From positions 1-41,777 of the forward strand of contig CBFFRP010000158.1 of assembly GCA_965644295.1 (NCBI GenBank): a stretch of 41,777 nucleotides of DNA, in the 5' to 3' direction. Positions 1-41,777 of this stretch are shown in pieces. Origin of the DNA: Paraphysomonas bandaiensis. Its lineage: Eukaryota > Protista > Chrysophyceae. Within the stretch, counting starts at the first letter, position 1, and the number at the start of each line of letters is the position of its first letter. A program made the position numbers and the translations under genes. The notes beneath the pieces were generated by a model, which made no database searches, was not told the origin of the DNA, and worked only from the letters and a program-made list of their open reading frames with translations.

Positions 1-3000
1 TACTGTCTTGAACTATGTAATCAGAACGCCTTGCAGACTGACTCAGCTTTGTTAGTGGATAGCGTTTGCCTTTGTACTCAGCAATGATGACGTCTGCTAG
101 GAATGTGTTCTTCGCATAAAGGGATAGTCCTTTGGCAGTGTTATCGGCGTACGCAATGTAGAACTTTCTTGACCAGTCCTTGTCCCAGCTGGTGGTATCA
201 AGTGCTGGAGTTGGTCTGATCGTTCGTGTGGTCGTGGATTGGTGTGAGTTGTGAAGGTTCGTTGGTTGGTCACTTTCATCGTAATTTACGACCTTTTTGG
301 CTTTCCGGGTTGGCTGGCATCGACTTGTCAACGCAGTTTGGGCGTGTTTCAACTGCATCTTCCTGTGCGATGGTAGTGCTCCAGGGGTTGAAGCCTGCAG
401 AATCTGTCGATTTGTTCGTGCTAACTTGGTGCTGCTGGACGAGGTTGTTCTGGTGCTGGTCGTCTTTGATGTCCTATTGTTGTTCGTGATTGAGTCCGCG
501 GGAAGTGTAGGTGGAGCGATGGGGTCAGACGTTGAGAGTATACTGGTGGCCAAGGTGTTTTCAAGAGATAGTAGGGCGTTGTCTAGGGCAGTAGAAAGAC
601 CGGCAGGGTCTAAGAGGAAGTAGTGAGCATCTTGTAGTATGACATGGTAGTAGTTATCACGAACAGCGTTCCTAAGTTCCTCCACCTTCCATGCGATGTT
701 ATAAGCTACTTTGTCAGTAGGGATACCTACAATGCTGAGATAATTACCATTTTGCGCCCACGTCGTGCAGGGGTTGATAGTAGAGGCTAAAAGGTGGACC
801 TCTCGCACTGAGAGCCAGTGAGTTATGTCGTCCTCCGTAGTGTATGTTGTTTTGGCAGGTATTAAAAGTGCGGCCTGTGCGTGATCCAACTTATGTCGTA
901 GTGGCTGAAGTGTGTGATGGGCCATGCACTCCCGTTGCATTGTGTCGAACGCTTGGGTGCCTAATGTATTTATAAAAGATGCTAGCGTGTGACGGTCCTT
1001 GCGTTGTTTGAGGTCTAATTTCAGACAGGAGCGAGTGTGTCGCCTGCTTGAAGCAAGAATGTGCAGATGATAGAGTGTGCTGTATGCGCAGTATCCATCA
1101 CTTGGGATATGTTGTTGTGTGCGAAGGGCTGAGGGTCTGAGGGTGAGGCGATAGACTCTGCTCATGTCGCACATATGGAGCCTGAGTTGTCGACGGTCCG
1201 TGGGGTTCATCTGCCGTAGTTGACGTCGAGCTCTCGGTGACAAGGAGACTGCAATTACTTCCCTCTGTTCCTGTTGCTCTCTTTGCTCATGTAGCATAGA
1301 TGGTACAGTTGACGGTTCCGAAGTCCAGATGATGTTGGTGCTCTGTCTGGAGGTCTGGTGTTGTAGAAAACAGGATAGCCGCTCCTGAGTTCGTGTTAGA
1401 GCGTGCATGATGGAGGTGGGGATATTTGTTGCATTTAGTATGTGAAACCCATGCTGGCTGCGTATGATGTCATGGGTTACCACAGTGTTGGTAGAAGCGT
1501 GCACTGTTAGTGCCTGTCTGGAGAATGGTGATAGCTGTGCCCAACCAGGCGCCAGGTGCGGTTGAACAGCGTCCCATAGTCTGTATGGTATGGAGAGAAG
1601 ATCGAGTAGCAGTTGGAAATCCTCCGTGTCTAGATGTAGTCCTGTGTGTGGATTCGAGGATTCATATTGCATAAGTGTCTTACGGAGAGTGACAGTGGCT
1701 GTTGAGGGAATACCCTTTGTCAGGCAAAGGGTCCGCACATGCCTAGATACAACATGAGTGGAGTCTGCCCAGGGTTTGTTGCCATTCGCGAGATGCTGGG
1801 CAACTAGTAGGGCGCTGTGCGTGGTGTCCAATTTGTGCTCTGGTAGCGTGAATGATATCATGAGATCATAGTTGTCCGTCCTGGAAGCCTTGGCTATGAA
1901 TCCTTCCCATATGTCTAAACAGGCAGGGGATAGCATGTGTGCGTATATTTCTTTTAAAAGGTTTCCCTGTGGGGAGGCAGCAATGGTTTGGGTTTCATCA
2001 TATCTAACCCAGTTGTTCAGCAGATCGGAGTGAAAGGGCGTGTGACCCCGGCCCTCTGTGTAGTGTAGGGGGTATGTGGCAATATCCTTGGGCAGTACAT
2101 CCGGCCTGAGGTCAGGAGTGGTAGTGGAGAGTGAGGATGGGCCGTCTGGGGCTAATGCTGGAGTTCCCATGGTGTTCAGTTGAGTAGGGTTGGTGGTAGG
2201 TGGCTTCCGTTTGACTGGGAAATAGTCAAATAACGTTGCATACGGTGTGGTGGCATCCTTAGTGGATAAGGGTAATGTGTGGGTGGATTTGCTAGGTCCG
2301 TCACCGCTGTTATCGGAGGAGAATTCCTTCCCCTGAAGGGCGTGGGAGGGATGGTTGATGGACCTGGCACGGTGGACTCCTTGCATTCCCTTGGAATGAC
2401 ATTGCAACACATTTTGGAGACGCATGATGACGAAGTCAGGAATTCTCTCGAGTAGCGCGTGTAGTTCCAACTCCACCGGGTATTTGGTGTCCAGGAAGAA
2501 GTGATCGTTGGAGCAAAACACATCATAAGATGGAAGGAATTGAGTTTGTGGAAGGAAGGAGGAATAGTGGGTGGACCAATACGCCCAGTAAGGGAGAGGC
2601 GATAGTTTGTCTGGGGGTTTTCTAGGAGGAGGTAGAGTGTACTGTGTGTGTGTATGACACTGCAGTGGTGTTATGAGTGTGTTGGACAGTGAGAGAGAGC
2701 TGGTGATGTGTCCAACAGTACAGGTAGACAGGTACATGGACATGGTGATGTGTCCAACAGTACAGGTAGACAGGTACATGGACATGGTGATGTGTCCAAC
2801 AGCAGTAGAGGTATACACGGAATGGTATACATCCTGTAGGACACAGTAGTACAGTAGTCGAGTATACCGTATGCGGAATACAGTGTCTATCCAATGAGAT
2901 GGATGGGCTGTGGGGGTGATAGGTGAACAGGGTGAGGGGGTAGCCTGCTGGGTGGATGGACCACAGACAAACCATGTTGGGTTGGGTTGAGTGGGCGGCA

Positions 3001-3388
3001 GAAGGCAGCCCTGTTGCACAGTTGAGAGGGATCGAGAGTATTCAGTGATTGCATAGGGGGTCCATGGGGGTCGTTTTCGTGAGCCTGCTCGCACGAGCCA
3101 TGTTCTGAGAGGTTGTAGCCGTAGAAAGCGATGGGTGAGACGAAGTTGTCTGCTGAGGGGATAGCACGTAGGTGCGGTCAGCGCTGCATTGGTGCAGGCA
3201 CGTGGTTTAACTGAAGTAGTTGAGTAGGGTGAAGGTTGCAAGGCCAGGCAGGGGGGCTTGGAGCGTGTACAACATGGTGTGACAGGTAATTTGTCGGAAG
3301 CGTGGTGGTCAACAAAATGCAGCAGTAAGGGAGTGTAAAAGGCCCTGGGCACACTGATGTGACTCAGCCACAGTCTCAATAGAGACAT
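1..3388 (-). CDS. Retrotransposon polyprotein, N-terminal part (>=1129 aa, open at window edge): low-complexity N-terminus, OTU-like cysteine protease, S/T-rich linker, start of SET domain
   Basis: Manual translation of the minus frame: ATG at 3388 (in-frame stop just upstream at 3404-3406), no stop down to position 2. OTU motifs IPSDGYCAYSTL (Cys 1088-1090), HWLSVREVHLLA and QDAHYFLL (His 623-625). SET motif I GLSLYAKNTFLADVIIAEYKG at ~68-130. Missing from the ORF track because it has no stop inside the window. Confidence 0.85.
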   Translation of the reverse strand, partial: MSLLRLWLSHISVPRAFYTPLLLHFVDHHASDKLPVTPCCTRSKPPCLALQPSPYSTTSVKPRACTNAALTAPTCYPLSRQLRLTHRFLRLQPLRTWLVRAGSRKRPPWTPYAITEYSRSLSTVQQGCLLPPTQPNPTWFVCGPSTQQATPSPCSPITPTAHPSHWIDTVFRIRYTRLLYYCVLQDVYHSVYTSTAVGHITMSMYLSTCTVGHITMSMYLSTCTVGHITSSLSLSNTLITPLQCHTHTQYTLPPPRKPPDKLSPLPYWAYWSTHYSSFLPQTQFLPSYDVFCSNDHFFLDTKYPVELELHALLERIPDFVIMRLQNVLQCHSKGMQGVHRARSINHPSHALQGKEFSSDNSGDGPSKSTHTLPLSTKDATTPYATLFDYFPVKRKPPTTNPTQLNTMGTPALAPDGPSSLSTTTPDLRPDVLPKDIATYPLHYTEGRGHTPFHSDLLNNWVRYDETQTIAASPQGNLLKEIYAHMLSPACLDIWEGFIAKASRTDNYDLMISFTLPEHKLDTTHSALLVAQHLANGNKPWADSTHVVSRHVRTLCLTKGIPSTATVTLRKTLMQYESSNPHTGLHLDTEDFQLLLDLLSIPYRLWDAVQPHLAPGWAQLSPFSRQALTVHASTNTVVTHDIIRSQHGFHILNATNIPTSIMHALTRTQERLSCFLQHQTSRQSTNIIWTSEPSTVPSMLHEQREQQEQREVIAVSLSPRARRQLRQMNPTDRRQLRLHMCDMSRVYRLTLRPSALRTQQHIPSDGYCAYSTLYHLHILASSRRHTRSCLKLDLKQRKDRHTLASFINTLGTQAFDTMQRECMAHHTLQPLRHKLDHAQAALLIPAKTTYTTEDDITHWLSVREVHLLASTINPCTTWAQNGNYLSIVGIPTDKVAYNIAWKVEELRNAVRDNYYHVILQDAHYFLLDPAGLSTALDNALLSLENTLATSILSTSDPIAPPTLPADSITNNNRTSKTTSTRTTSSSSTKLARTNRQILQASTPGALPSHRKMQLKHAQTALTSRCQPTRKAKKVVNYDESDQPTNLHNSHQSTTTRTIRPTPALDTTSWDKDWSRKFYIAYADNTAKGLSLYAKNTFLADVIIAEYKGKRYPLTKLSQSARRSDYIVQDS
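2701..2802. repeat. 42-bp tandem repeat (~2.4 copies), in frame within the element ORF (TVGHITMSMYLSTC)
   Basis: Unit TGGTGATGTGTCCAACAGTACAGGTAGACAGGTACATGGACA starts at 2701, 2743 and (partial) 2785. Confidence 0.95.
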
Positions 3389-3601
3389 TGGGCTTGGAGC
3401 TGGTTAATAGAGTGAAACTTTATGTTGGACTGTATTTGCCATCGTAGGGCAGAGAATTATGAGCTATATTTACACATCGACTTGCATAGATGTATCAGTA
3501 AAGCAGGGATGTAGTACGCATGTAGTCTTATGAAAATCTTTTGGACAGCAAGCTGTAATTCATTTGCCCATATATTGCATACCTACATATATATAGTCCC
3601 A

Positions 3602-4084
3602 GTGGTGAATATCTTATTATTAGCGTTTAAGAGTCGGGACTAATTTAACATTGCAATTTAACTCACTAGCGCTTAGCTCTGATGTCCTACTATTTAGCGC
3701 TACGAAAGCTGCTTGTGCGTCACCACAAGCGCCAAGGTGTAACCAATTTTTCCCTTTCACTCCAAGGAAACGCAGTGAGCAAGCAGAATGTTGATATACC
3801 TGACACTGAAGGATTTTTGAGTCTTACAGGTGAGCAGCCCGGATGCTTAACTTCAGCGGGCAGCCCAGTACCCCGGATGCCTGTTTATTCGTCAGGGACC
3901 CAAATGAGTCTACTCATGTGACACTTTTTGGTGTCCCTTGTACCACACAAGCATGCGGCTATGAGTGGGTAGAACAACATCTGCTGGCTATATATGCAGC
4001 TCACGTTAGTCTCCCGGAGAAATATCTTCTTTACTTATTCCTCAGAATATCACGTAAAGGTGCGAATCCGACTTTGTTGAGGGC
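3602..4084 (-). mobile_element. SINE-like non-autonomous retroelement, bounded by a 10-bp TSD
   Basis: Direct repeat TATAGTCCCA at 3592-3601 and 4085-4094. 3685-3745 (rc) matches the LINE 3' UTR 26803-26863 at 54/61 nt. Ends in AATAAGATATTCA, similar to the LINE end AATAAAAGACATTCA. Homologous segments occur at ~17325-17595 and ~27378-27620. Confidence 0.75.
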
Positions 4085-7548: not shown

Positions 7549-8685
7549 ATGCTCTGGAGTCTAAACCAAACAACTTTAACAATTAGGACAACTTCGGCTG
7601 TTAAATTGATCTAGAATTGAAATGAATACCTCCGATATCTCGTTATGAACAAAATACCAAAATACTGAAAATTTGTCCTGTAATTCTTCACAACATGAAC
7701 ACAGTGATGTTTCTGACCATCACAAGGTGGAACTGCAACAGTTAAATTTAGCAACTTCCTTTGATAGAGATAAACAGTTACATATCCAGTCTGGTACTAT
7801 GTTATTGTAGATACTTCTGTGTTGATAGCAGTAAGAATAACAGTCCACCCCACGATCAAGATAATTTCATCTTACATCCTTTGGCGTGAAGAGATATATC
7901 GTTATGAACAAAATACTGAAAATTTGTCCTGTAATTCTTCACAACATGAACACAGTGATGTTTCTGACCATCACAAGGTGGAACTGCAACAGTTAAATTT
8001 AGCAACTTCCTTTGATAGAGATAAACAGTTACATATCCAGTCTGGTACTATGTTATTGTAGATATTTCTGTGTTGATAGCAGTAAGAATAACTGTCCACC
8101 CCACGATCAAATTAATTACATCTTACAGCCTTTGGCGTGAAGAGATACATCGTTGTGTCTATGCACGTATATTATTTGAATTTACTGACTACGTAAAGTT
8201 TTATTTCGTAATACTATAAGGCACTACTATATTCTTTAATTAAATGAAATTTCAACCGGTTGCTCGCTGGTACTGGATATAGGGGAAGTATTTCGTTGTA
8301 ATTATACTCACGACGTATTAGTGCAAACCTAACACTCTCTATGTGGATAGATAGTTTTGTAAAAACGACAAGCAACAACTATGAGTGTGCTAGCCATCGC
8401 ATATCCTAAATTCTACTTCATTATTGGTGTTTAGTTTTGGTAATACTACGTACGTCGTATGTTCACGCTGACATAAATTCGTATAGTTGAAAACTCAACG
8501 ACTCATTTAGACCTAAGCTGTAACTTTTCTCTTCTTCTTTATAGGTTGCTCATCTTCTACTTTGCTATTGCTGTGCGGATTGGAGCTATTAGACCTGTCA
8601 GGATTCTTTCGGTTTTGTCGTCCGGGTTTAGCTTTGCTACCTTTCTTTCCATTTCCAGCTGTCTGGCGATTTTTCGGGTTGTTAC
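7549..8685. repeat. Direct segmental duplication of 10385-11270, with an extra internal ~251-bp tandem duplication
   Basis: Both copies begin ATGCTCTGGAGTC and end CGGGTTGTTAC. The block TCGTTATGAACAAAATAC...CTTTGGCGTGAAGAGATA occurs twice here (~7640-8150) but once in the other copy; lengths differ by 251 bp. Confidence 0.92.
8513..8685 (-). pseudogene. Duplicated 3' fragment of the RRM gene (C-terminal ~57 codons)
   Basis: Encodes NNPKNRQTAGNGKKGSK...KKKRKVTA*, as at 11098-11270, but lacks the RRM-coding 5' part. Confidence 0.8.
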
Positions 8686-9265: not shown

Positions 9266-9707
9266 ATGGACCCAGAAATAGCACAAAAATTAGAAGAATG
9301 TGAGGCGACTTTAACGAAATTACAGCAGTCACCATATCAACACGCCGCCAGAACAGTGCAGGTTGGTATATATATATGTAGCAACATATTCGAAAGAAAG
9401 TAATCGTGTACCATTTCCAGGAGATATTGAAGAAGAATGTGGCAATAATAAGCGGTATTATATTATATGCATATTTAAATAGTTTAAATTATTAGCTTAG
9501 AATTAGATAGTATCAAGAAAATTCGGGATGATCAAGATGAATTTTCCAAAAATTCCATCGAGCGCACCGCAGTACTTATCCAAGAGCTAAACTTCAATTT
9601 AAACGAGGTGATCACTTGTATATTGACATTCTTGGATAATGTTGTGGAGATACTAGGTTGTCAGGATATATCAGGATGCTTCAATGTTGCTATCTACCTC
9701 AAAATGA
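9266..9707 (+). CDS. Small hypothetical coiled-coil protein (95 aa, 4 exons)
   Basis: Exons 9266-9361, 9421-9454, 9501-9607 and 9657-9707 with GT-AG introns splice in frame to MDPEIAQKLEECEATLTKLQQSPYQHAARTVQEILKKNVAIISELDSIKKIRDDQDEFSKNSIERTAVLIQELNFNLNEVVRIYQDASMLLSTSK*. Confidence 0.7.
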
Positions 9708-10384: not shown

Positions 10385-11270
10385 ATGCTCTGGAGTCAAA
10401 ACCAAACAGCTTTAACAATTAGGACAACTTCGGCTGTTAAATTGATCTAGAATTGAAATGAATACCTCCGATATCTCGTTATGAACAAAATACCAAAATA
10501 CTGAAAATTTGTCCTGTAATTCTTCACGACATGAACACAGTGATGTTTCTGACCATCACAAGGTGGAACTGCAACAGTTAAATTTAGCAACTTCCTTTGA
10601 TAGAGATAAACAGTTACATATCCAGTCTGGTACTATGTTATTGTAGATACTTCTGTGTTGATAGCAGTAAGAATAACAGTCCACCCCACGATCAAAATAA
10701 TTACATCTTACAGCCTCTAGCGTGGAGAGATATATCGTTGTGTCTATGCACGTATATTATTTGAATTTACTGACTACGTAAAGTTTTATTTCGTAATACT
10801 ATAAGGCATTACTATATTCTTTAATTAAATGAAATTTCAACCGGTCGTTCGCTGGTACTGGATATAGGGGAAGTATTTCGTTGTAATTATACTCACGACG
10901 TATTAGTGCAAACCTAACACTCTCTATGTGGATAGATAGTTTTGTAAAAACGACAAGCAACAACTATGAGTGTGCTAGCCATCGCATATCCTAAATTCTA
11001 CTTCATTATAGGTGTTTAGTTTCGGTAATACTACGTACGTCGTATGTTCACGCTGACATAAATTCGTATAGTTGAAAACTCAACGACTCATTTAGACCTA
11101 AGCTGTAACTTTTCTCTTCTTCTTTATAGGTTGCTCATCTTCTACTTTACTATTGCTGTGCGGATTGGAGCTATCAGACCTGTCAGGATTCTTTCGGTTT
11201 TGTCGTCCTGGCTTAGCTTTGCTACCTTTCTTTCCATTTCCAGCTGTCTGGCGATTTTTCGGGTTGTTAC
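10385..11270. repeat. Source copy of the segmental duplication (RRM gene 3' end plus downstream flank)
   Basis: Near-identical to 7549-8685 apart from the internal tandem duplication there. Confidence 0.9.
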
Positions 11271-11987: not shown

Positions 11988-12121
11988 GGCTAATTATATT
12001 ATATCTCACTACTTGAGAAGTGATTTGGCCAGAATGATATACAAGTGAAGCATTCCTCGAATCAGTACCACTCAACTCCTACCCCCATATTCTATGTACT
12101 GCTGTATATACCCTTCATACG

Positions 12122-12169
12122 TACATACATACATACATACATACATACATACATACATACATACATACA

Positions 12170-12203
<34 letters not shown>

Positions 12204-12705
12204 CATACATACATACATACATACATACATACATACATACATACATACATACATACATACATACATACATACATACATACATACATACATACATACATAC
12301 ATACATACATACATACATACATACATACATACATACATACATACATACATACATACATACATACATACATACATACATACATACATACATACATACATAC
12401 ATACATACATACATACATACATACATACATACATACATACATACATACATACATACATACATACATACATACATACATACATACATACATACATACATAC
12501 ATACATACATACATACATACATACATACATACATACATACATACATACATACATACATACATACATACATACATACATACATACATACATACATACATAC
12601 ATACATACATACATACATACATACATACATACATACATACATACATACATACATACATACATACATACATACATACATACATACATACATACATACATAC
12701 ATACA

Positions 12706-12737
<32 letters not shown>

Positions 12738-12747
12738 CATACATACA

Positions 12748-12779
<32 letters not shown>

Positions 12780-13190
12780 CATACATACATACATACATAC
12801 ATACATACATACATACATACATACATACATACATACATACATACATACATACATACATACATACATACATACATACATACATACATACATACATACATAC
12901 ATACATACATACATACATACATACATACATACATACATACATACATACATACATACATACATACATACATACATACATACATACATACATACATACATAC
13001 ATACATACATACATACATACATACATACATACATACATACATACATACATACATACATACATACATACATACATACATACATACATACATACATACATAC
13101 ATACATACATACATACATACATACATACATACATACATACATACATACATACATACATACATACATACATACATACATACATACATACAT
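12122..13190. repeat. (TACA)n microsatellite, ~1.07 kb (~265 units) with a few interruptions
   Basis: Directly visible; the ORF-track HTYI/MYVC ORFs are translation artefacts of this repeat. Confidence 0.99.
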
Positions 13191-16346: not shown

Positions 16347-16790
16347 GTGTAACGCTGTGGCGTTCAACTATACTCCTGTGAGTGAGATTTGGATGTCTAT
16401 CTACTGGTGAGTGCTATGGCTATGGTTGGATACTTATATGGGCTACGCTAGTAAGAGTGAGACCTCTTGCTTGTGATACATATTGTGTATATTATTATAT
16501 GTATGCTTGCATGTACACAACACTATGCCTTGCACTGCATGTCATCATTGTGTTGATATTGCATTGTATGCACTCACATTTATTACTATATCACCCGGTG
16601 TTATACCTCGGGTTAGCTATATAGTAAATTGCATACATATAATAATATACACAATATGTATCACAAGCAAGAGGTCTCACTCTTACTAGCGTAGCCCATA
16701 TAAGTATCCAACCATAGCCATAGCACTCACCAGTAGATAGACATCCAAATCTCACTCACAGGAGTATAGTTGAACGCCACAGCGTTACAC
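16347..16790. repeat. Perfect 160-bp inverted repeat with 124-bp spacer (foldback/MITE-like)
   Basis: 16347-16506 is the exact reverse complement of 16631-16790; no clear TSD. Confidence 0.95.
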
Positions 16791-17324
16791 AAGAATAAAA
16801 GTCTGATTTGAAATGGTATTGTAAAAAAACGAGGAATGATAAGTTCCCGTTAATTTATGGAAGGCAATGGATGCAGCAGAGTAGAATTTAATCCTAATCC
16901 AACAACATATTTGTGATATTGTAACTCTATTAATCATAACTAATCATACTAACAATCAATAATTGCGCCTGTAAGGACTATGCTTATGTAACAAGTAATT
17001 ATTGTTTAAACTGCGTCATTAAAAAATACCAGTACAGAAATTTTAATCAGTTCAAATAGTGTATGATTTTTCTGGATGGATTCGGCGTGATAATCTGCAT
17101 TCCCACGTCATATAAGTACGCGTCAATATCACGGATTTCATTTTTCAGCACTGAAACCCTTTTCTAGAGGTAACAACGCGTCATTCCCACCTCAAAATCC
17201 GACAATCATATATAGTTGAAAATATACAATAACTAAATGTAATTAACATTAACCCTAGTCTTCTAATAAAAGTACATATATGACACTTTTCCATAATAAT
17301 ATGTGAAACCTGGTGAAATCACTT

Positions 17325-17595
17325 TATCCTACTATATTTAACCCTACGGAGGTTGCTTGTGCGTCGCCGCAAGCACCAAGGTGCCTCCACCTCCGGTCTA
17401 TCGTGAGCATGTTTGCAAACGCCGTGAGCAAGCAGAATGTTGATATACCTGACATCTTCTGACTTCAGGTTTTCTTAGTCCTTAAGGTAAACATCCCGGA
17501 TGCTTGACTTCAGCAGGCAGCCCAATACCCCGGTTACCGTTCAGGTGGACCCTCTCCCGGATGCCCTTGAGGTGGGTCCATTTCTGGATGCCTAC
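17325..17595 (-). mobile_element. SINE-like element, diverged/partial copy
   Basis: Contains GCTTGTGCGTCGCCGCAAGCACCAAGGTGC and GTGAGCAAGCAGAATGTTGATATACCTGACA, as at 3685-3880; boundaries approximate. Confidence 0.7.
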
Positions 17596-23717: not shown

Positions 23718-24415
23718 TACTAAGTAAATACGTAGTATAACCTGGATTTGATTGCATGGATAGGTAATATTTCACTCATGACTGAACCTTATCGTACTGT
23801 TATATGTATAATAGGACATCTGGAAAAATTATTGCATACTACTGTTTCTAGTATTGCGTGTAAAATTCGTTACTGTTCTGATATTAATAATATTTGCTAT
23901 TTAAACAGCCACTGCTACTAGATAACTAGTAAACAATGTATTAAAGCAATGACAGATATATTCTAGTGTCTACAGTCTACAGTAATTCTACCGTGGTCCG
24001 AAATAAACTTAAAACAGTTCAGAACAACATGAAGAGGAAGTTAACATCAATTAGACTACTTTACATCATATGACAAAGGCAACAAACACCAATTCGCACT
24101 TTTTAGTGAAATTTTTCATCTAAATGAAGAGTGATAATTGTGGTTTAAAACGAGTGTATACCTGTATCGAAGTGAAGGTCTTGTCGTAAAATTTCATAAA
24201 TTAGAGTTTCCTAGATACTTGACACTAGACTAACTCTCCCAATTTCACTGGGGTACCATTAGAGATTATATTATTCATTTGACTATACTATAAAACATAT
24301 ATTCAAATTTTCACAAGTATATTACGTTGTACTGCATTTATTTCCAAACTATTTTATACTACTTATACACTTGATTACTTAGAAATTGGTAATCGAGCAA
24401 CTCTCAACAGTCATA

Positions 24416-26749
24416 TCGATACACTATTTGGGGGCTGATCTACCACTAACACCTACAGACACGGACTCATACAATTGGTGTACAAACTACCTAAAGGCAG
24501 CGGGCACACACCTTGGGATCAGGCACGCCTCAGCGGGTTGCAAAGTCATGGTTATAGAGACCCAAATCATACCCACTCTACTTTACAAGGCCACCAAGGC
24601 TTCTTGGCCCCTGCAATATTACAAGAACATCGATTCAACTTGCGCAAACCTTTATAGGAAAGCACTAAGCCTGAGTCCTGGTTACCCCACGGAACTGATC
24701 TACCTCTCTCTCAGGCATAATGGACTTGGAATGAAACGCTTCTCAGACTCCGCTCAAGAACAAAAATGGGGCTCCCTACAGCGCGCCATAATCCTAGGCG
24801 GTGATGCCGGTGACGCAGCGCACTTTCTCCTAACACAGACTATCGCGCCGTACCCAAACTACCACCACTTTGCCTTAAGTCTGCGGGAATGGGGTACGGA
24901 GGTTGGCCTTACTCTCCAACAACCCGACAGTCCGGAACCTCAAGATACCAACACCCTGACCAACATTATCCGCACATTAGAACTGGATGATGTAACCGCG
25001 GATACATACCAGGCAATCTTCACCGACGGCTCATACACGCCTACAGCCCTATCCCCGCGCCGCATTACGCATGTAAACCCACGTACAAGATGGGCACATT
25101 ATGGAGGAGCGGCGGCAGTCTGGCTCCCCCCGGAGGATGAATGGAAGAACGGTACAACAAAAATACTGCGATTAGAGACACCCTTCAGCGACGTGCCTGG
25201 ACTTGGCCCGTATGCATACGAGCTCATGGGAGCAGCAATGGCGCTTATACTGTCTGCGCGACTCCCATCACACATACCGATAAATACGGACTGTAAGGCC
25301 GTCTGCATACGCACACACGAAGCACTCTCCGCCAGACGTCGGGCACTGGGGCATCGTGCCAAAGGTGTACTGCTCGAAAGCATTGCAGCAAATAACGATT
25401 GCAAAAGGACAGTAGCCTGGGTCCGATCACACCCCGAACGACGCACCTCTGATGAGTCTGAATGGACATATGAAGACAAAGGAATTTACATTGCCGACGC
25501 AGTAGCAGGAGGGGACTGGCTTGAGGTAGATCGACTACTCGGACGACAAAATTACACTGTCTGTAACATGGAAGTGGACCAAGCCATCGAGAGAATACTC
25601 ACCGAGGGTTTATGGCACTGGCGCCTAACTGGGGAACGACGGCCGTATCGCACTAGCCCCCTGCTCACGGATTTCCAATCCCTCCGTAATCAACGGACGC
25701 TGGAGGCATATACAGCTCTCCGAGACCAACGCTACGGTCACAATCCCGACCGGGCTCCTGGATACTGGAAAGACAGCGGAGCACTACTTCCGCGCAAACT
25801 GGCGCAAGCAGATGGTGGACCATCAAAGGACAAAGTGAGCTCCCACCTGCGCCAAAGAGTACTAAATGCAGCACTGACATGGGACAAATCATTCAGCATA
25901 GGAAGAAACCGGGCGAAAACCAAACACGGACTCGACATGGCTAAAGCCGTATGCTCTGACTGCGGATTTAGACTAGACTCACTCAAGCATATGTGTCTAG
26001 ACTGCACAAACGACACCATAACGCAGATAAGGGAGTCTGCATTTCACAGCCACAAAAACGCGCTCCTAGAAGAAATGAGGAATCCGGAATTACCCCAATG
26101 GACCACCACTGTACTCCAGCGAATCTCCAGCAGGGCCTGGAACCCTTCCGTGCCACAGGTGGAGAGATTCTGGACGGGTACCATCACAATGACACAGCTT
26201 GAAATGGTTTTTGGAGATCACATCCATGAATCACTGTCATCCCAAGGACTGCGCAGCATCGAATCAGCGATCATCAAATTACTGCTACCGCTGTTCGCTG
26301 CAGCAAAGCTCATGATCCAAGATCGCGGAAGAAGATACGTGACCCTACGGAAAGGCCCCCCAAGGCTACTACCGCGGCCGAGTCCAAACCACAGACAGAA
26401 ACGGAAACGCCCAAGGGTGCTAAGATTACTAGGAATCCACAGACGAACCGAGACTGGAACACCGCCCACCGTACCTCTGAACCCTACCAACCATACACAG
26501 AGGACCATAGCAACGGACCGTATGAAACCAACAGGCCCTAGACAAAGGCGACGACGTCTCCGGCAACTCCACCTATGCCCAACGCCCAAACGGTGCATGG
26601 CGACACCGCCACATTCCACCACACCATCAACCTCTCAGTCCACACATCTAGTGCTCGGTACACTCAGGACCTTAATACAGAACCCGGTACCTCAGAGTCA
26701 GGCGGAACCGTATCCCAAGGGGAGACCCCCGGACAACACGCGCCAGTGA
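24416..26749 (+). CDS. C-terminal part of a LINE polyprotein: RT end/thumb, RNase H, CCHC zinc finger
   Basis: Stop-free frame. HYLG and LIYLSLRHNGLGM (post-RT); RNase H acidic residues in FTDGS, AYELMG, NTDCKAV and IADAVA plus WVRSH; CSDC...HMCLDC. The ORF-track start at 24386 lies in flanking DNA. Confidence 0.85.
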   Translation, partial: SIHYLGADLPLTPTDTDSYNWCTNYLKAAGTHLGIRHASAGCKVMVIETQIIPTLLYKATKASWPLQYYKNIDSTCANLYRKALSLSPGYPTELIYLSLRHNGLGMKRFSDSAQEQKWGSLQRAIILGGDAGDAAHFLLTQTIAPYPNYHHFALSLREWGTEVGLTLQQPDSPEPQDTNTLTNIIRTLELDDVTADTYQAIFTDGSYTPTALSPRRITHVNPRTRWAHYGGAAAVWLPPEDEWKNGTTKILRLETPFSDVPGLGPYAYELMGAAMALILSARLPSHIPINTDCKAVCIRTHEALSARRRALGHRAKGVLLESIAANNDCKRTVAWVRSHPERRTSDESEWTYEDKGIYIADAVAGGDWLEVDRLLGRQNYTVCNMEVDQAIERILTEGLWHWRLTGERRPYRTSPLLTDFQSLRNQRTLEAYTALRDQRYGHNPDRAPGYWKDSGALLPRKLAQADGGPSKDKVSSHLRQRVLNAALTWDKSFSIGRNRAKTKHGLDMAKAVCSDCGFRLDSLKHMCLDCTNDTITQIRESAFHSHKNALLEEMRNPELPQWTTTVLQRISSRAWNPSVPQVERFWTGTITMTQLEMVFGDHIHESLSSQGLRSIESAIIKLLLPLFAAAKLMIQDRGRRYVTLRKGPPRLLPRPSPNHRQKRKRPRVLRLLGIHRRTETGTPPTVPLNPTNHTQRTIATDRMKPTGPRQRRRRLRQLHLCPTPKRCMATPPHSTTPSTSQSTHLVLGTLRTLIQNPVPQSQAEPYPKGRPPDNTRQ

Positions 26750-26981
26750 GTCCTCAGACACACGAGCAGGGCGAATTCACACACAAACATCAAGAACGGA
26801 AGTGGTTGCACCTTGGTGCTTGCGGCGACGCACAAGCAGCTTCTGTAGCGTTAAATAGTAGGATAATAGAATTTGCGCTGATTAGTTATGGGTAGAGGTC
26901 TAACTAGTAGACTAGTATTCAACTAGCCGCTATATCGGAACGGGTTTTTAACGCCTATTGCTAAATAAAAGACATTCAATA
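24416..26981 (+). mobile_element. 5'-truncated non-LTR retrotransposon (LINE) with RNase H, bounded by an 11-bp TSD
   Basis: TSD CAACAGTCATA at 24405-24415 and 26982-26992; starts at RT motif 7 (SIHYLG); 3' end AATAAAAGACATTCAATA. Confidence 0.88.
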
Positions 26982-27377
26982 CAACAGTCATAGCCGTTGG
27001 TTTGAGTGTTATTTTTGCTATAATTGTGTTTAGTGACATTCCATGAACCAACATTTAGTTTCTGCTCTCGTCATTGTCATTCTGTAGACCTTGGCAAGTT
27101 TCTATTGGAATTGCTAAACCTTTACCTGTATCATATTAGCATGAATACCATATATATACAACATGCAATGTCTATACCTCTTGAAATATAGCTGAATCTG
27201 GCTACATGCTACACGTGATATAACTCCGTATTACATTAAATATCTGATTTAGAGTTGCAATATGTTATGATCACTCTACAGCATGCTTGAGAAGTGCTAA
27301 TGATTGTGATGAAATTGGAAGTAATAGATAAAAAATACTAGAAGTAGTCACCGTTTCCCACTTGTATACTATGTCAA

Positions 27378-30283: not shown

Positions 30284-30495
30284 TAAAGGGTTGATATAGT
30301 GATCGATATGATTGTATTGACTGATAAGTGTGTTACATGATCTCATCAGTATGTTCATCTATATATACACTACCAACACAGTCGATCTTATATACACATA
30401 CATATACATACTCTTTACGGAATATGATGCATATATATTGGTTTATTTTCATGGTCACCATCATCAAGCCACCAGCAATATGCCTTCGCATAGTT

Positions 30496-30568
30496 GCCGC
30501 GATAGCTCAGTTGGGAGAGCGTGAGACTGAAGATCTCAAGGTCACTGGTTCGATCCCGGTTCGTGGCA
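30496..30568 (+). tRNA. trnF: tRNA-Phe (GAA)
   Basis: 73-nt cloverleaf GCCGCGA...TCGTGGC-A, anticodon loop CTGAAGA, TTCGATC T-loop, followed by a T8 Pol III terminator. Confidence 0.97.
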
Positions 30569-30857
30569 TATCTTTTTTTTATTTTTTGCCCTATATATAC
30601 GAAAAGTACGTAGTATGTAATAATGGTATGGAGGGAACTATAGAGTATTCTTCCACTATATCTACAATGGTAAATATAAATAGCATAGACAACTTATGCT
30701 AATGGTATATATTGTTAATTTACTGTGATAAGGTTAAAGTAGCGACTTCAATCATACCATTTCTCAATCATTTGTACAAAAGATAGAGGTGTAAAATTTG
30801 TAGACAAAAATAATTTTGTCCCTCCAAAATTTTGATCAAAAAAATAAAAAAAAGATA

Positions 30858-30930
30858 TGCCACGAACCGGGATCGAACCAGTGACCTTGAGATCTTCAGT
30901 CTCACGCTCTCCCAACTGAGCTATCGCGGC
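30858..30930 (-). tRNA. trnF: tRNA-Phe (GAA), identical inverted copy
   Basis: Exact reverse complement of 30496-30568, also followed by a T-tract. Confidence 0.97.
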
Positions 30931-32070
30931 AACTATGCGAAGGCATATTGCTGGTGGCTTGATGATGATGACCATGAAAATAAACCAATATATATGCATC
31001 ATATGTCATATGAGGGTGTACAGGGCATATGTATGTATAATATGTATGTATGTGTATATATGCATCCACTAGAAGATATAAAGATCCATAGTACAGTGAG
31101 TGGTGCCAGCAGCCCACCAACACGACACGAGGAGAGATGAGATCAGTCTCCAGCAACAAATCTCTTAGTGTCTACTGTACAAGTGGTTGTCTATAGGTTA
31201 CAGGTACACTATCTCATGCATCTCTACTTACTATTGACTGTTACTGCTGCTGCTGGTGCTGCTGGTGTATGCAGTGTACATATCCCATCCATATCATACT
31301 AGAGCCCTACAGATCTTTCAGTAGTTTACCAGCTGAACAAACTACATAGAGACGAACTCCTCTATCAGCTGACGTCGTAATGATGTTGTTGACATGACAT
31401 ATACTCATATACTCACAGCTCAACAGTATGTATATACACACATATACACGTCCACACACAATTTCAGGTATGGAAATGGGAAGAATTATAAAAGTGCTCG
31501 TATCCCTCTATAAAGTTTGTTTTTAGCCTAGTGAAATAATTCTTAACGCCGTTTCTTAGTCGCCTTCTTATTAAGTAATTCTCTGTTGCACTTACACGTA
31601 CATATAAGTTTGAAAACTACAGTATAGTCAGCAGTAGTGCTTATCGTTGCTTTGGACTTCAGAGTACTGAAGCAAGCAGGATTTACAAAAACATAAACTA
31701 TCGTAGTATATACGACAAGGTTCTTATAATTGAGCACTCATCTTCTAGTAGTTGGGATATTAGAAAACGACAACACAGTATAACGTAGAAACCTAAAAAA
31801 TATCACCACAAACATATCAATTATTTTACGATATCAGGAGTAATGAAAGATGGTTTCACAAAGTCTTATTTGTGTGCACATATAGTGGCAATATTGAGTC
31901 CATCAAACATCTAGTTTCTATTTCACCAGTAGACACTACAAAACAGCTCATCGCTATAGTTGCGGAAAATACACAGCATCTGAAGATCTTGGTGAGCATG
32001 ATACAGAAAAGTGTTTATCTGCAGTGGCTGAATCGGATACACATCCAGACGCGTGCTACAAAGAAATAGG

Positions 32071-40302: not shown

Positions 40303-41777
40303 ACCAGTATACTCTCAACGTCTGACCCCATCGCTCCACCTACACTTCCCGCGGACTCAATCACGAACAACAATAGGACATCAAAGACGACCAGCACCAG
40401 AACAACCTCGTCCAGCAGCACCAAAAGTTAGCACGAACAAATCGACAGATTCTGCAGGCTTCAACCCCTGGAGCACTACCATCGCACAAGAAGATGCAGT
40501 TGAAACACGCCCAAACTGCGTTGACAAGTCGATGCCAGCCAACCCGGAAAGCCAAAAAGGTCGTAAATTACGATGAAAGTGACCAACCAACGAACCTTCA
40601 CAACTCACACCAATCCACGACCACACGAACGATCAGACCAACTCCAGCACTTGATACCACCAGCTGGGACAAGGACTGGTCAAGAAAGTTCTACATTGCG
40701 TACGCCGATAACACTGCCAAAGGACTATCCCTTTATGCGAAGAACACATTCCCAGCAGACGTCATCATGTCACTGAGTACAAAGGCAAACGCTATCCACT
40801 AACAAAGCTGAGTCAGTCTGCAAGGCGTTCTGATTACAAAGTTCAAGACAGTACTGGTACCTTCGCAATGAATGGCTTTGACCAAGTCCGACAATGTGTA
40901 ACATGCGAAAAGCTGGGTATATTAATGACCCCCTAGCCTGCAAACATGGCTAATGTCAAGTTTGTCACGAAAAATAAACGCCTCTATGTCCGTACAATAC
41001 GTCCCATTGCTAAGGATGAAGAACTTCTCATCAACTACGGGCATCATTACTGGCGTGATCAACGCTGGCCACTTGAGATATTAATCCAAGCCAGGGCTGC
41101 GTAACGACAGCGACATAGGCGGTGCCAATAAAGCAGTATGGGACGGACTCCTTGCAGACAAGAGTGGTACTCCTACAGAGACCTCCAGCAGCATCCCCAA
41201 GGCTCCCTCGGGAGCATAGCCATGGGACTCCGACTCTCCACACATGGAACACAAATGGCAATCCGGCATCTCACACGGGCAAAGTCCAGTGACGATCCTG
41301 ATCATCCGACTGCTTTTTGCGGCAACAATTGGACGTGCTCCTATTACAGGATGTCCATCCACCAGAAACTCAGGCCAACTTCTTCACACGTATCATAGAA
41401 GATGCAATCCAGGGATCAAGAATATGCCTCTTCCTCAGCAAGCGGCCAAAACTGACTTCAAGAGACCCACTGGTGGCGGGGTACAGTAGTCACAATCAGC
41501 GAACACTGGAAGCGCCGCCTCGCCTGCACAAAGGCTGACTTTGCTGGACTCGGTTTAGCGAGGCCGACCAGAGGTTCAAAACGTCGGTGGCGCACGCCCT
41601 AGTACTAATAAGCGTCTATCTACCCCCGAAGCCATCCACGCCAGGCTCTTGCACATTATGGAGCAAATTGACCAAGCTAGGGAGAGCGTCCCGTGGTATC
41701 TGTGCTGCTGACCCCTACAAGCTCCTCTGCAACATCCTTTACGAAGTGGAGTCACTAAAGCCAGAGCCAAGGACCAT
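40303..41777 (+). mobile_element. Non-LTR retrotransposon copy 2 (5'-truncated, frameshifted): linker, SET domain, APE endonuclease; runs off the window
   Basis: 40303-40853 is the near-identical rc of 1-547. SET C-terminal motifs AGYINDP (~40912-40932) and ANVKF...LYVRTIRPIAKDEELLINYGHHYW (~40949-41053). APE motifs LRLST-WNTNG (~41228), DVLLLQD (41332-41352), GG-VVTISEHW and LVLISVYLPP (~41599-41628). Several 1-2 bp frameshifts must be assumed. Confidence 0.8.

Follow-up and report, generated by a model that had tools for sequence, protein, structure and literature searches.

A LINE of Paraphysomonas bandaiensis with predicted OTU-like protease modules and a PR/SET-like domain ahead of its APE endonuclease

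The element and its copies

The window analyzed here is the whole of contig C158 (CBFFRP010000158.1; 41,777 nt) in the 62.5-Mb, 669-contig genome assembly of the chrysophyte Paraphysomonas bandaiensis, and a copy of one long interspersed nuclear element (LINE) lies at each of its ends (Table 1). With a probability of roughly three in four, the copy at positions 1–3458 makes up the 5′ third of an APE-type retrotransposon that lacks long terminal repeats (a non-LTR element), is autonomous and was recently active, and whose accessory domains serve it. Translation of the minus strand from 3388 to 2 gives 1129 codons with no stop, as reported in a first-pass annotation made from the sequence alone. 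The frame opens with an ATG approximately 70 nt downstream of the 5′ end of the element and leaves the contig at its start, and because it runs off the contig it is missing from the mechanical list of open reading frames (ORFs). The G+C content is 0.49 in window 1–4000 compared with 0.36–0.39 in the adjoining DNA. At least 55 protein-level matches to the 1129-residue query, at 89–100% identity, are distributed genome-wide, far in excess of chance, and many of them have long open frames and many lie at contig ends. An association of the element with telomeres or contig ends was considered and dropped, since the window is an entire contig and both of its ends stop inside a repeat, so that they mark assembly breaks.

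The inverted copy at the far end of the window was claimed to supply the rest of the SET domain followed by APE, and it does so, with a Pfam SET match at C158:40943-41041 and the first ~175 residues of APE. Relative to an intact copy it is 95.9% identical and has 15 insertions of 1–6 nt and no deletions, and because of these insertions it can be read only across several frames. They may represent true decay or uncorrected assembly error at the contig edge, and both fit. The order OTU-SET-APE had accordingly been assembled from two copies, as the first-pass annotation acknowledged. Intact copies hold all of these parts in one ORF. The reference copy, L013 (C440:3500-13400, minus strand), encodes an uninterrupted 3016-residue protein (L013:674-9721:-) with the protease-like module, SET, APE and reverse transcriptase (RT), in an element with a full length of approximately 9.36 kb. 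Pfam matches on this copy are SET at residues 1087–1191 (35.7 bits, cut-off 22.4), Exo_endo_phos at 1257–1494 (37.7 bits, cut-off 24.5) and RVT_1 at 1951–2244 (55.1 bits, cut-off 29.6). An RT downstream of APE had been named in advance as a test, and the two are found in that order in a single ORF, both past the Pfam cut-off, which is the arrangement by which an APE-type non-LTR element is recognized. Farther downstream are RNase H-type D-E-D-H-D motifs, recognized by eye and alignable with those of the metagenomic protein P0018, then a CCHC motif, a conserved C-terminal domain and a basic proline-rich tail. The full order is therefore three tandem paralogous protease-like modules, a Ser/Thr/Pro-rich linker, a PR/SET-like domain, APE, RT, RNase H (by motifs), and CCHC with a helical tail. 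The gap between SET and APE is ~65 residues in family A, the family of the window's element, and 66–87 residues across all families.

The boundaries of the element are sharply defined. Its 5′ boundary, at window ~3458, falls on the identical base in 12 other copies, and in 10 copies the 3′ end is exact at ...CATTCACTAC(T), with unrelated flanking DNA beyond. None of the 10 3′ ends examined carries a poly(A) or microsatellite tail; this does not bar membership among LINEs, because LINEs with a defined 3′ end and no tail exist. A 13-bp target-site duplication (TSD) surrounds the intact copy L013. Together, the fixed 5′ and 3′ ends, the TSDs, and the dispersed, multi-copy and 5′-truncated state of the family constitute the signature of target-primed reverse transcription. 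The copies are 98–100% identical and many have long open frames, a degree of sequence preservation that suggests recent activity. Runs from 14 studies, among them seawater metagenomes and three coded organisms, contain DNA nearly identical to the element in the window; the three runs labeled as single organisms are possibly cultures. Contigs from poly(A) metatranscriptomes cover most of window 700–3459, which suggests that the element is transcribed.

Two further features of the metatranscriptome data were observed. Depth is 10–100x higher over the first ~1.2 kb of the element (window 2200–3460) than further downstream, and contigs break at 1718, 2286 and 2590 into common unrelated sequence, a pattern suggestive of subfamilies or of chimeric transcripts that differ in their 5′ parts.

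Table 1. Positions of the two copies of the element in the window and of the parts recognized within them
Feature	Position	Strand	Basis
Copy 1: 5′ 3.46 kb of the ~9.36-kb LINE (family A), broken off at the start of the contig	1–3458	−	99.5% identity to intact L013 over 3458 nt
5′ untranslated region, ~70 nt, before the ATG of the ORF	3389–3458	−	
ORF residues 1–1129 of 3016, stop-free	2–3388	−	Intact homologue L013:674-9721:-
Module m0: decayed upstream paralogue with FVCGL and DHFFLD boxes, repeat-interrupted	2450–3001 (residues ~130–313)	−	jackhmmer cross-match and alignment
42-nt tandem repeat inside m0, 2.4 copies, encoding a 14-residue repeat	2701–2802		
Module m1: Ser instead of Cys in family A, His box HGFHIL retained	1289–2098 (residues 431–700)	−	
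Module m2: predicted OTU-like cysteine-protease fold, Cys767 and His922 intact	554–1186 (residues 735–945)	−	AlphaFold2 (AF2) model, Foldseek, VIA, Atlas, feature search
Linker, low-complexity, Ser/Thr/Pro-rich	134–553 (residues 946–1085)	−	45% amino acid identity, family A vs D
First ~44 residues of SET, motif I KGLSLYA	2–133	−	Pfam SET at 1087–1191 in the intact copy
Copy 2: 5′-truncated at ORF residue ~947, leaves the contig at its end	~40303–41777 (start also read as 40296)	+	
Copy 2 contents in order: linker, SET, APE	SET ~40722–41041; APE ~41242–41777	+	

The OTU-like modules and the SET domain

Profile searches among the sister families of this genome, designated A, A2, D, B (= P0001) and C, revealed up to three tandem paralogous modules at the N-terminus of the protein. 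The first-pass annotation had recognized an OTU-like module here, and one is present; it is not single, being accompanied by two paralogues, and the middle module of the three has lost its Cys in family A. The upstream paralogue, m0, contains an internal repeat at which some protein matches to other copies are split (1–231 and 197–1129), and these split matches may reflect differing repeat number. In m1 of family A a Ser replaces the Cys seen in other families and the His box is retained, and this module is probably a pseudo-protease. Both m0 and m1 appear to be decayed duplicates in family A, where m2 is the sole module retaining both Cys and His. The motifs quoted earlier for m2 are found where they had been placed: Cys767 (codon 1088–1090) lies in SDGYCAY, the W-x-x-x-x-E motif follows it as HWLSVRE, and His922 (codon 623–625) lies in DAHYF.

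Several lines of evidence connect m2 with OTU deubiquitinases. An AF2 model from a 7-row alignment of natural sequences has a pLDDT (predicted local distance difference test) of 78.8 and a pTM (predicted template modeling score) of 0.78. When this model is compared with the PDB by Foldseek, the top 50 matches are all OTU deubiquitinases, among them nairovirus vOTUs, otubains, OTUD2 and a Wolbachia OTU, with a best E of 5.5e-3 and template modeling (TM) scores by target of up to 0.47. In VIA-align the rows spanning 134–150 residues are OTUs only (Z 5.0–5.7), and the remaining rows are helical hairpins of 50–75 residues. The top row of the ESM Atlas shape search is an otubain (Peptidase C65) cluster, and a language-model feature search gave 30 named clusters, of which 29 carry PF02338 (OTU); these come from giant viruses and haptophytes and score 0.90–0.92. 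Within the model Cys767 opens a helix and His922 opens a strand, as expected for papain-like and OTU active sites, and the two residues are invariant across families down to ~30% identity, metagenomic relatives included. Known members of PF02338 (nairovirus vOTU, otubains, and the giant-virus and haptophyte OTUs) share with m2 the predicted fold, these positions of Cys and His, the Cys-box pattern small-G-aromatic-C-small, and HY/HF as the His box. They differ from it in that m2 has no sequence-profile match, does not conserve the acidic or amide third residue, and has a long helical insertion between its Cys and His halves. The modeled structure and the comparisons made with it indicate that m2 probably has the OTU fold; whether the predicted site is enzymatically active is an even bet. 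The proposal that an OTU-like module and a SET domain lie upstream of APE is thus upheld by Pfam for SET and APE, and for the OTU-like module by fold and language model, without a sequence match in Pfam or the PDB. Other searches returned little: a language-model search with m1 gave no usable match, exhaustive phmmer with residues 420–1000 gave three short fragments only, and a scan of metagenome contigs with the module alignment gave no relative.

The SET domain is recognized by sequence. Across families at 25–35% identity, the invariant or near-invariant residues are the Ala of motif I, C..ND, an Asn, and the YG and YW of EELLINYG..YW, and the catalytic Tyr, that of NYG, does not vary. Among proteins of solved structure, the closest in sequence are PBCV-1 vSET, KMT2C/D and PRDM1 (E 0.004–0.02). 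In family C, SET reaches 55.3 bits and PRDM2_PR scores 41.8 bits relative to a cut-off of 27. The domain resembles the PRDM PR/SET domains and vSET in having the SET fold, an EELLINYG..YW stretch like that of vSET (E 0.004) and no post-SET cysteine cluster. It is distinguished from them by ND in place of NH and by being embedded in a retrotransposon polyprotein. Family C carries an additional N-terminal SET, far upstream of the protease modules, in a 3731-residue open frame with two SETs (C644:3665-4036 and 7658-7972 = L039; also C566).

The genome has other long SET-bearing ORFs, at C661:12575-12892, C476:5077-5394 and C654:17896-18207 and in multi-copy 1526-residue frames (e.g., C119:140077-140379). 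The first three are the closest in-genome relatives of the LINE SET among those tested (28–37% identity, E 1e-11 to 1e-19), compared with 27% identity and E 3e-5 for the best host SET gene. The multi-copy frames, at 25–27% identity and E 1e-5 to 1e-8, do not clearly exceed that gene in similarity. These similarities suggest a transposon-borne SET lineage common to several element types.

The accessory domains are conserved to nearly the same degree as the enzymes of retrotransposition. Between families A and D, for which synonymous sites are saturated, amino acid identity is 0.66 for the OTU-like module, 0.70 for SET, 0.74 for APE and 0.74 for RT, and 0.45 for linker 946–1085. The check on OTU and SET by the ratio of nonsynonymous to synonymous substitution rates (dN/dS), put forward in the first-pass annotation, gives values for A versus A2 of 0.15 for the OTU-like module and 0.42 for SET, the latter from few changes, and the corresponding value for RT is 0.04. 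Given identities near those of APE and RT, and these dN/dS values, the OTU-like and SET domains evolve like working parts of the element. The Pfam set SET, APE and RT recurs in the sister families and in the metagenomic proteins P0005, P0006 and P0007.

Relatives, alternatives and possible functions

Relatives outside this genome place the element in a LINE design that is already on record, if barely. A search with the RT region found P0005 (3392 residues), P0006 and P0007 in three different metagenome sources, with RT regions 39–41% identical and SET, APE and RT confirmed by Pfam in each. SET is also among the precomputed Pfam domains of P0009 and P0013, whose RT regions are 37% and 42% identical, respectively. 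A hidden Markov model (HMM) of the module matches an OTU-like module in P0005 (twice), P0006, P0007 and P0016. A second search identified P0018 (4243 residues) and P0019 (4844 residues), both with Pfam Peptidase_C48. Pfam finds SET in P0018 only, and BLASTP with the SET of the element finds two SET-like stretches in P0019. P0018 can be aligned with the element across 1203 residues with 25% identity (E 6e-80), and by sequence comparison the APE-RT-RNase H core of the element is homologous to that of LINEs that carry C48 and SET. The order in P0018 is APE-RT-RNase H-CCHC-helical domain-C48-SET-C48, so that C48 and SET follow the CCHC motif, whereas the modules of the element precede APE. As a separate observation, P0007 (L048 385-1443) and P0006 (L050 212-1246) have a 344–352-residue ORF upstream of the giant ORF, with no Pfam match on record; family A in the window is without such an upstream ORF1.

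The first-pass annotation knew of no description of OTU, SET and APE in one ORF; to take the architecture as undescribed is an overstatement. Lescot et al. (2016, ISME J; PMC5029228) reported Dualen-1_GCr of the cryptophyte Geminigera cryophila, a 5287-residue protein with a SET methyltransferase, a C48 peptidase, APE, RT, RNase H, CCHC and a restriction-like endonuclease (RLE). The joining of SET and a cysteine peptidase to APE in a LINE is thus already described, in one sentence of that paper and a Repbase entry, and a literature search found no paper beyond it on a LINE with these three. The present element has OTU-like modules in place of C48. Other transposable elements likewise carry cysteine proteases of the ubiquitin or SUMO type as accessory domains: OTU occurs in Ginger1 and Helitron DNA transposons (PMC2836005), and Ulp1 in NeSL/Utopia LINEs (PMC4640811) and in Mutator. 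Among these, OTU is carried by DNA transposons; for non-LTR elements the two papers give Ulp1/C48 and not OTU, and neither reports the protease together with SET.

It could be argued from these relatives that the element is an ordinary member of the published Dualen/RandI group and that nothing about it is new. Compared by published description, Dualen-1_GCr is likewise a giant single LINE protein of a marine protist in which SET and a cysteine peptidase accompany APE, RT, RNase H (recognized in the element by motifs) and CCHC, and the long alignment with P0018 is an indirect link in the same direction. However, the 5287 residues of Dualen-1_GCr include a Ulp1-type (C48) peptidase and, C-terminally, an RLE, whereas the 3016 residues of the element include as many as three OTU-like modules and lack an RLE. 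The region after its CCHC motif has no PD-(D/E)xK motif and no nuclease fold match, and its model is all-helical (pLDDT 80.7). Lacking a second endonuclease there, the element falls outside the dual-endonuclease definition of Dualen. A comparison of the C-terminus of P0018 with PDB sequences, seeking an RLE, also found nothing. Simple membership in Dualen/RandI is therefore rather unlikely, and the element is best described as a real, new variant of a barely described LINE design that is not categorically new.

The proposal that this is an autonomous element served by its accessory domains has several points to contend with. The RNase H motifs have no Pfam match, and nothing was found among PDB sequences with the RNase H piece as query. 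The metatranscriptome contigs may contain DNA. There is no Pfam match at E≤1 to the protease modules in any family and none on the 1129-residue piece alone, and the module HMM searched against PDB sequences finds no OTU, only one chance lectin repeat. The structural scores for m2 are modest (TM 0.3–0.47, Z<6), and the residue three before the Cys varies across families (D, N, K or T), which leaves the third catalytic residue uncertain. The first-pass caveats on SET are borne out, since ND replaces the canonical NH in all families and motif I reads GLS in family A compared with the canonical GxG; in relatives it is GAGQG. SET could be a binding module only.

Much of this evidence also favors an alternative in which the accessory domains lack catalysis and are passengers or simple binding modules, with SET as a reader of histone tails like an inactive PR domain and the OTU-like modules as ubiquitin binders or as spacers, retained for targeting or folding and not for enzymatic editing. 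The ND for NH substitution, the non-canonical motif I of family A, the decay or loss of Cys in two of three protease modules, the missing Pfam OTU match and the unconserved third catalytic residue are all in keeping with it. Its probability is nevertheless put well below even, since the SET Tyr (NYG), C..ND, Asn and YW are invariant at 25–35% identity, as are Cys767 and His922 of m2. Active PRDM-type SET domains likewise do without the His, and family C matches PRDM2_PR above its cut-off.

A different alternative grants m2 activity and assigns it mainly to polyprotein processing in cis, where it would free the N-terminal modules or SET from the APE-RT core instead of acting as a host deubiquitinase. 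The element does encode one 3016-residue protein in which folded modules are parted by fast-evolving low-complexity linkers, and in some RNA viruses OTU-like proteases cleave polyproteins as well as removing ubiquitin. Against this stands the finding that no LxGG-type site is conserved at domain borders across families; moreover, processing and deubiquitination are not mutually exclusive. A pattern search for NPGP found none in the genome's own families and one each in P0005–P0007. A role confined largely to cis processing is doubtful, at about the same level as the passenger explanation. Finally, misassembly at contig ends into a chimera of a host gene (protease and SET) with a LINE, which might be suspected because both window copies touch contig ends and copy 2 has many small insertions, is refuted by the occurrence of the same colinear ORF, flanked by a TSD, inside the long contigs C440, C433, C426 and C644 and also in independent metagenome assemblies.

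If the accessory domains do serve the element, a mechanism can be proposed in which SET, which always adjoins APE, would be brought together with APE to the nicked target chromatin. There it would act on a histone or repair factor, methylating a lysine of this protein or at least binding a tail that carries one, and m2, like the OTU proteases of viruses, would take off ubiquitin or a ubiquitin-like tag or cut the giant polyprotein. We infer these functions from predicted domains, and the enzyme activities they call for are equally predicted. Within one LINE lineage SET is paired with a ubiquitin-type protease from either of two superfamilies, OTU-like here and C48 in P0018 and P0019, which argues that the pairing itself has been selected. 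The retention of SET beside the endonuclease, with proteases from two superfamilies in different branches, suggests that the pairing is useful to the element. A broader and more speculative extension, to which we assign still lower odds than to either functional alternative above, is that a widespread clade of marine-protist LINEs has repeatedly paired SET with a ubiquitin or ubiquitin-like protease and uses the two beside the endonuclease to rewrite chromatin or ubiquitin marks where it inserts. Histone methylation and ubiquitin signaling usually act upon retrotransposons, and the enzymes involved are not usually carried by them. A retrotransposon that marks its own insertion site could, if this extension is correct, evade or steer host silencing. 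Should the domains be active, these young intact elements would offer a tractable system for studying the manipulation of host chromatin at integration.

Other repeats in the window

Between the two copies of family A lies a third LINE fragment, at 24416–26982 on the plus strand, which is 5′-truncated and has 71.5% DNA identity to the last 2.57 kb of family A, from RNase H to the 3′ end. Its end reads ...GACATTCAATAC, an 11-bp duplication (CAACAGTCATA) lies on either side of it, and it contains a 787-residue open frame (24386–26749). By sequence it belongs to a related family and not to family A. Two pieces of 72–77 nt on the minus strand (3677–3748 and 17323–17399) share 87% identity with a GC-rich stretch in the LINE 3′ untranslated region (L013 reverse strand 9275-9353), and like pieces adjoin the 3′ ends of copies L021 and L026.

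The remaining repeats are of other kinds. A (CATA)n microsatellite at 12116–13190 comprises ~270 units over 1.07 kb with 98% matches and gives rise to spurious ORFs in several frames on both strands. A 251-nt unit occurs as two tandem copies, which are 97% identical, and a third copy lies at a distance of 2.6 kb (7658–8154 and 10494–10793). Near-perfect inverted repeats at 16347–16790 (160-nt arms, 124 nt between them) and 30422–31004 (166-nt arms, 251 nt between them) may be small foldback elements or resemble miniature inverted-repeat transposable elements.

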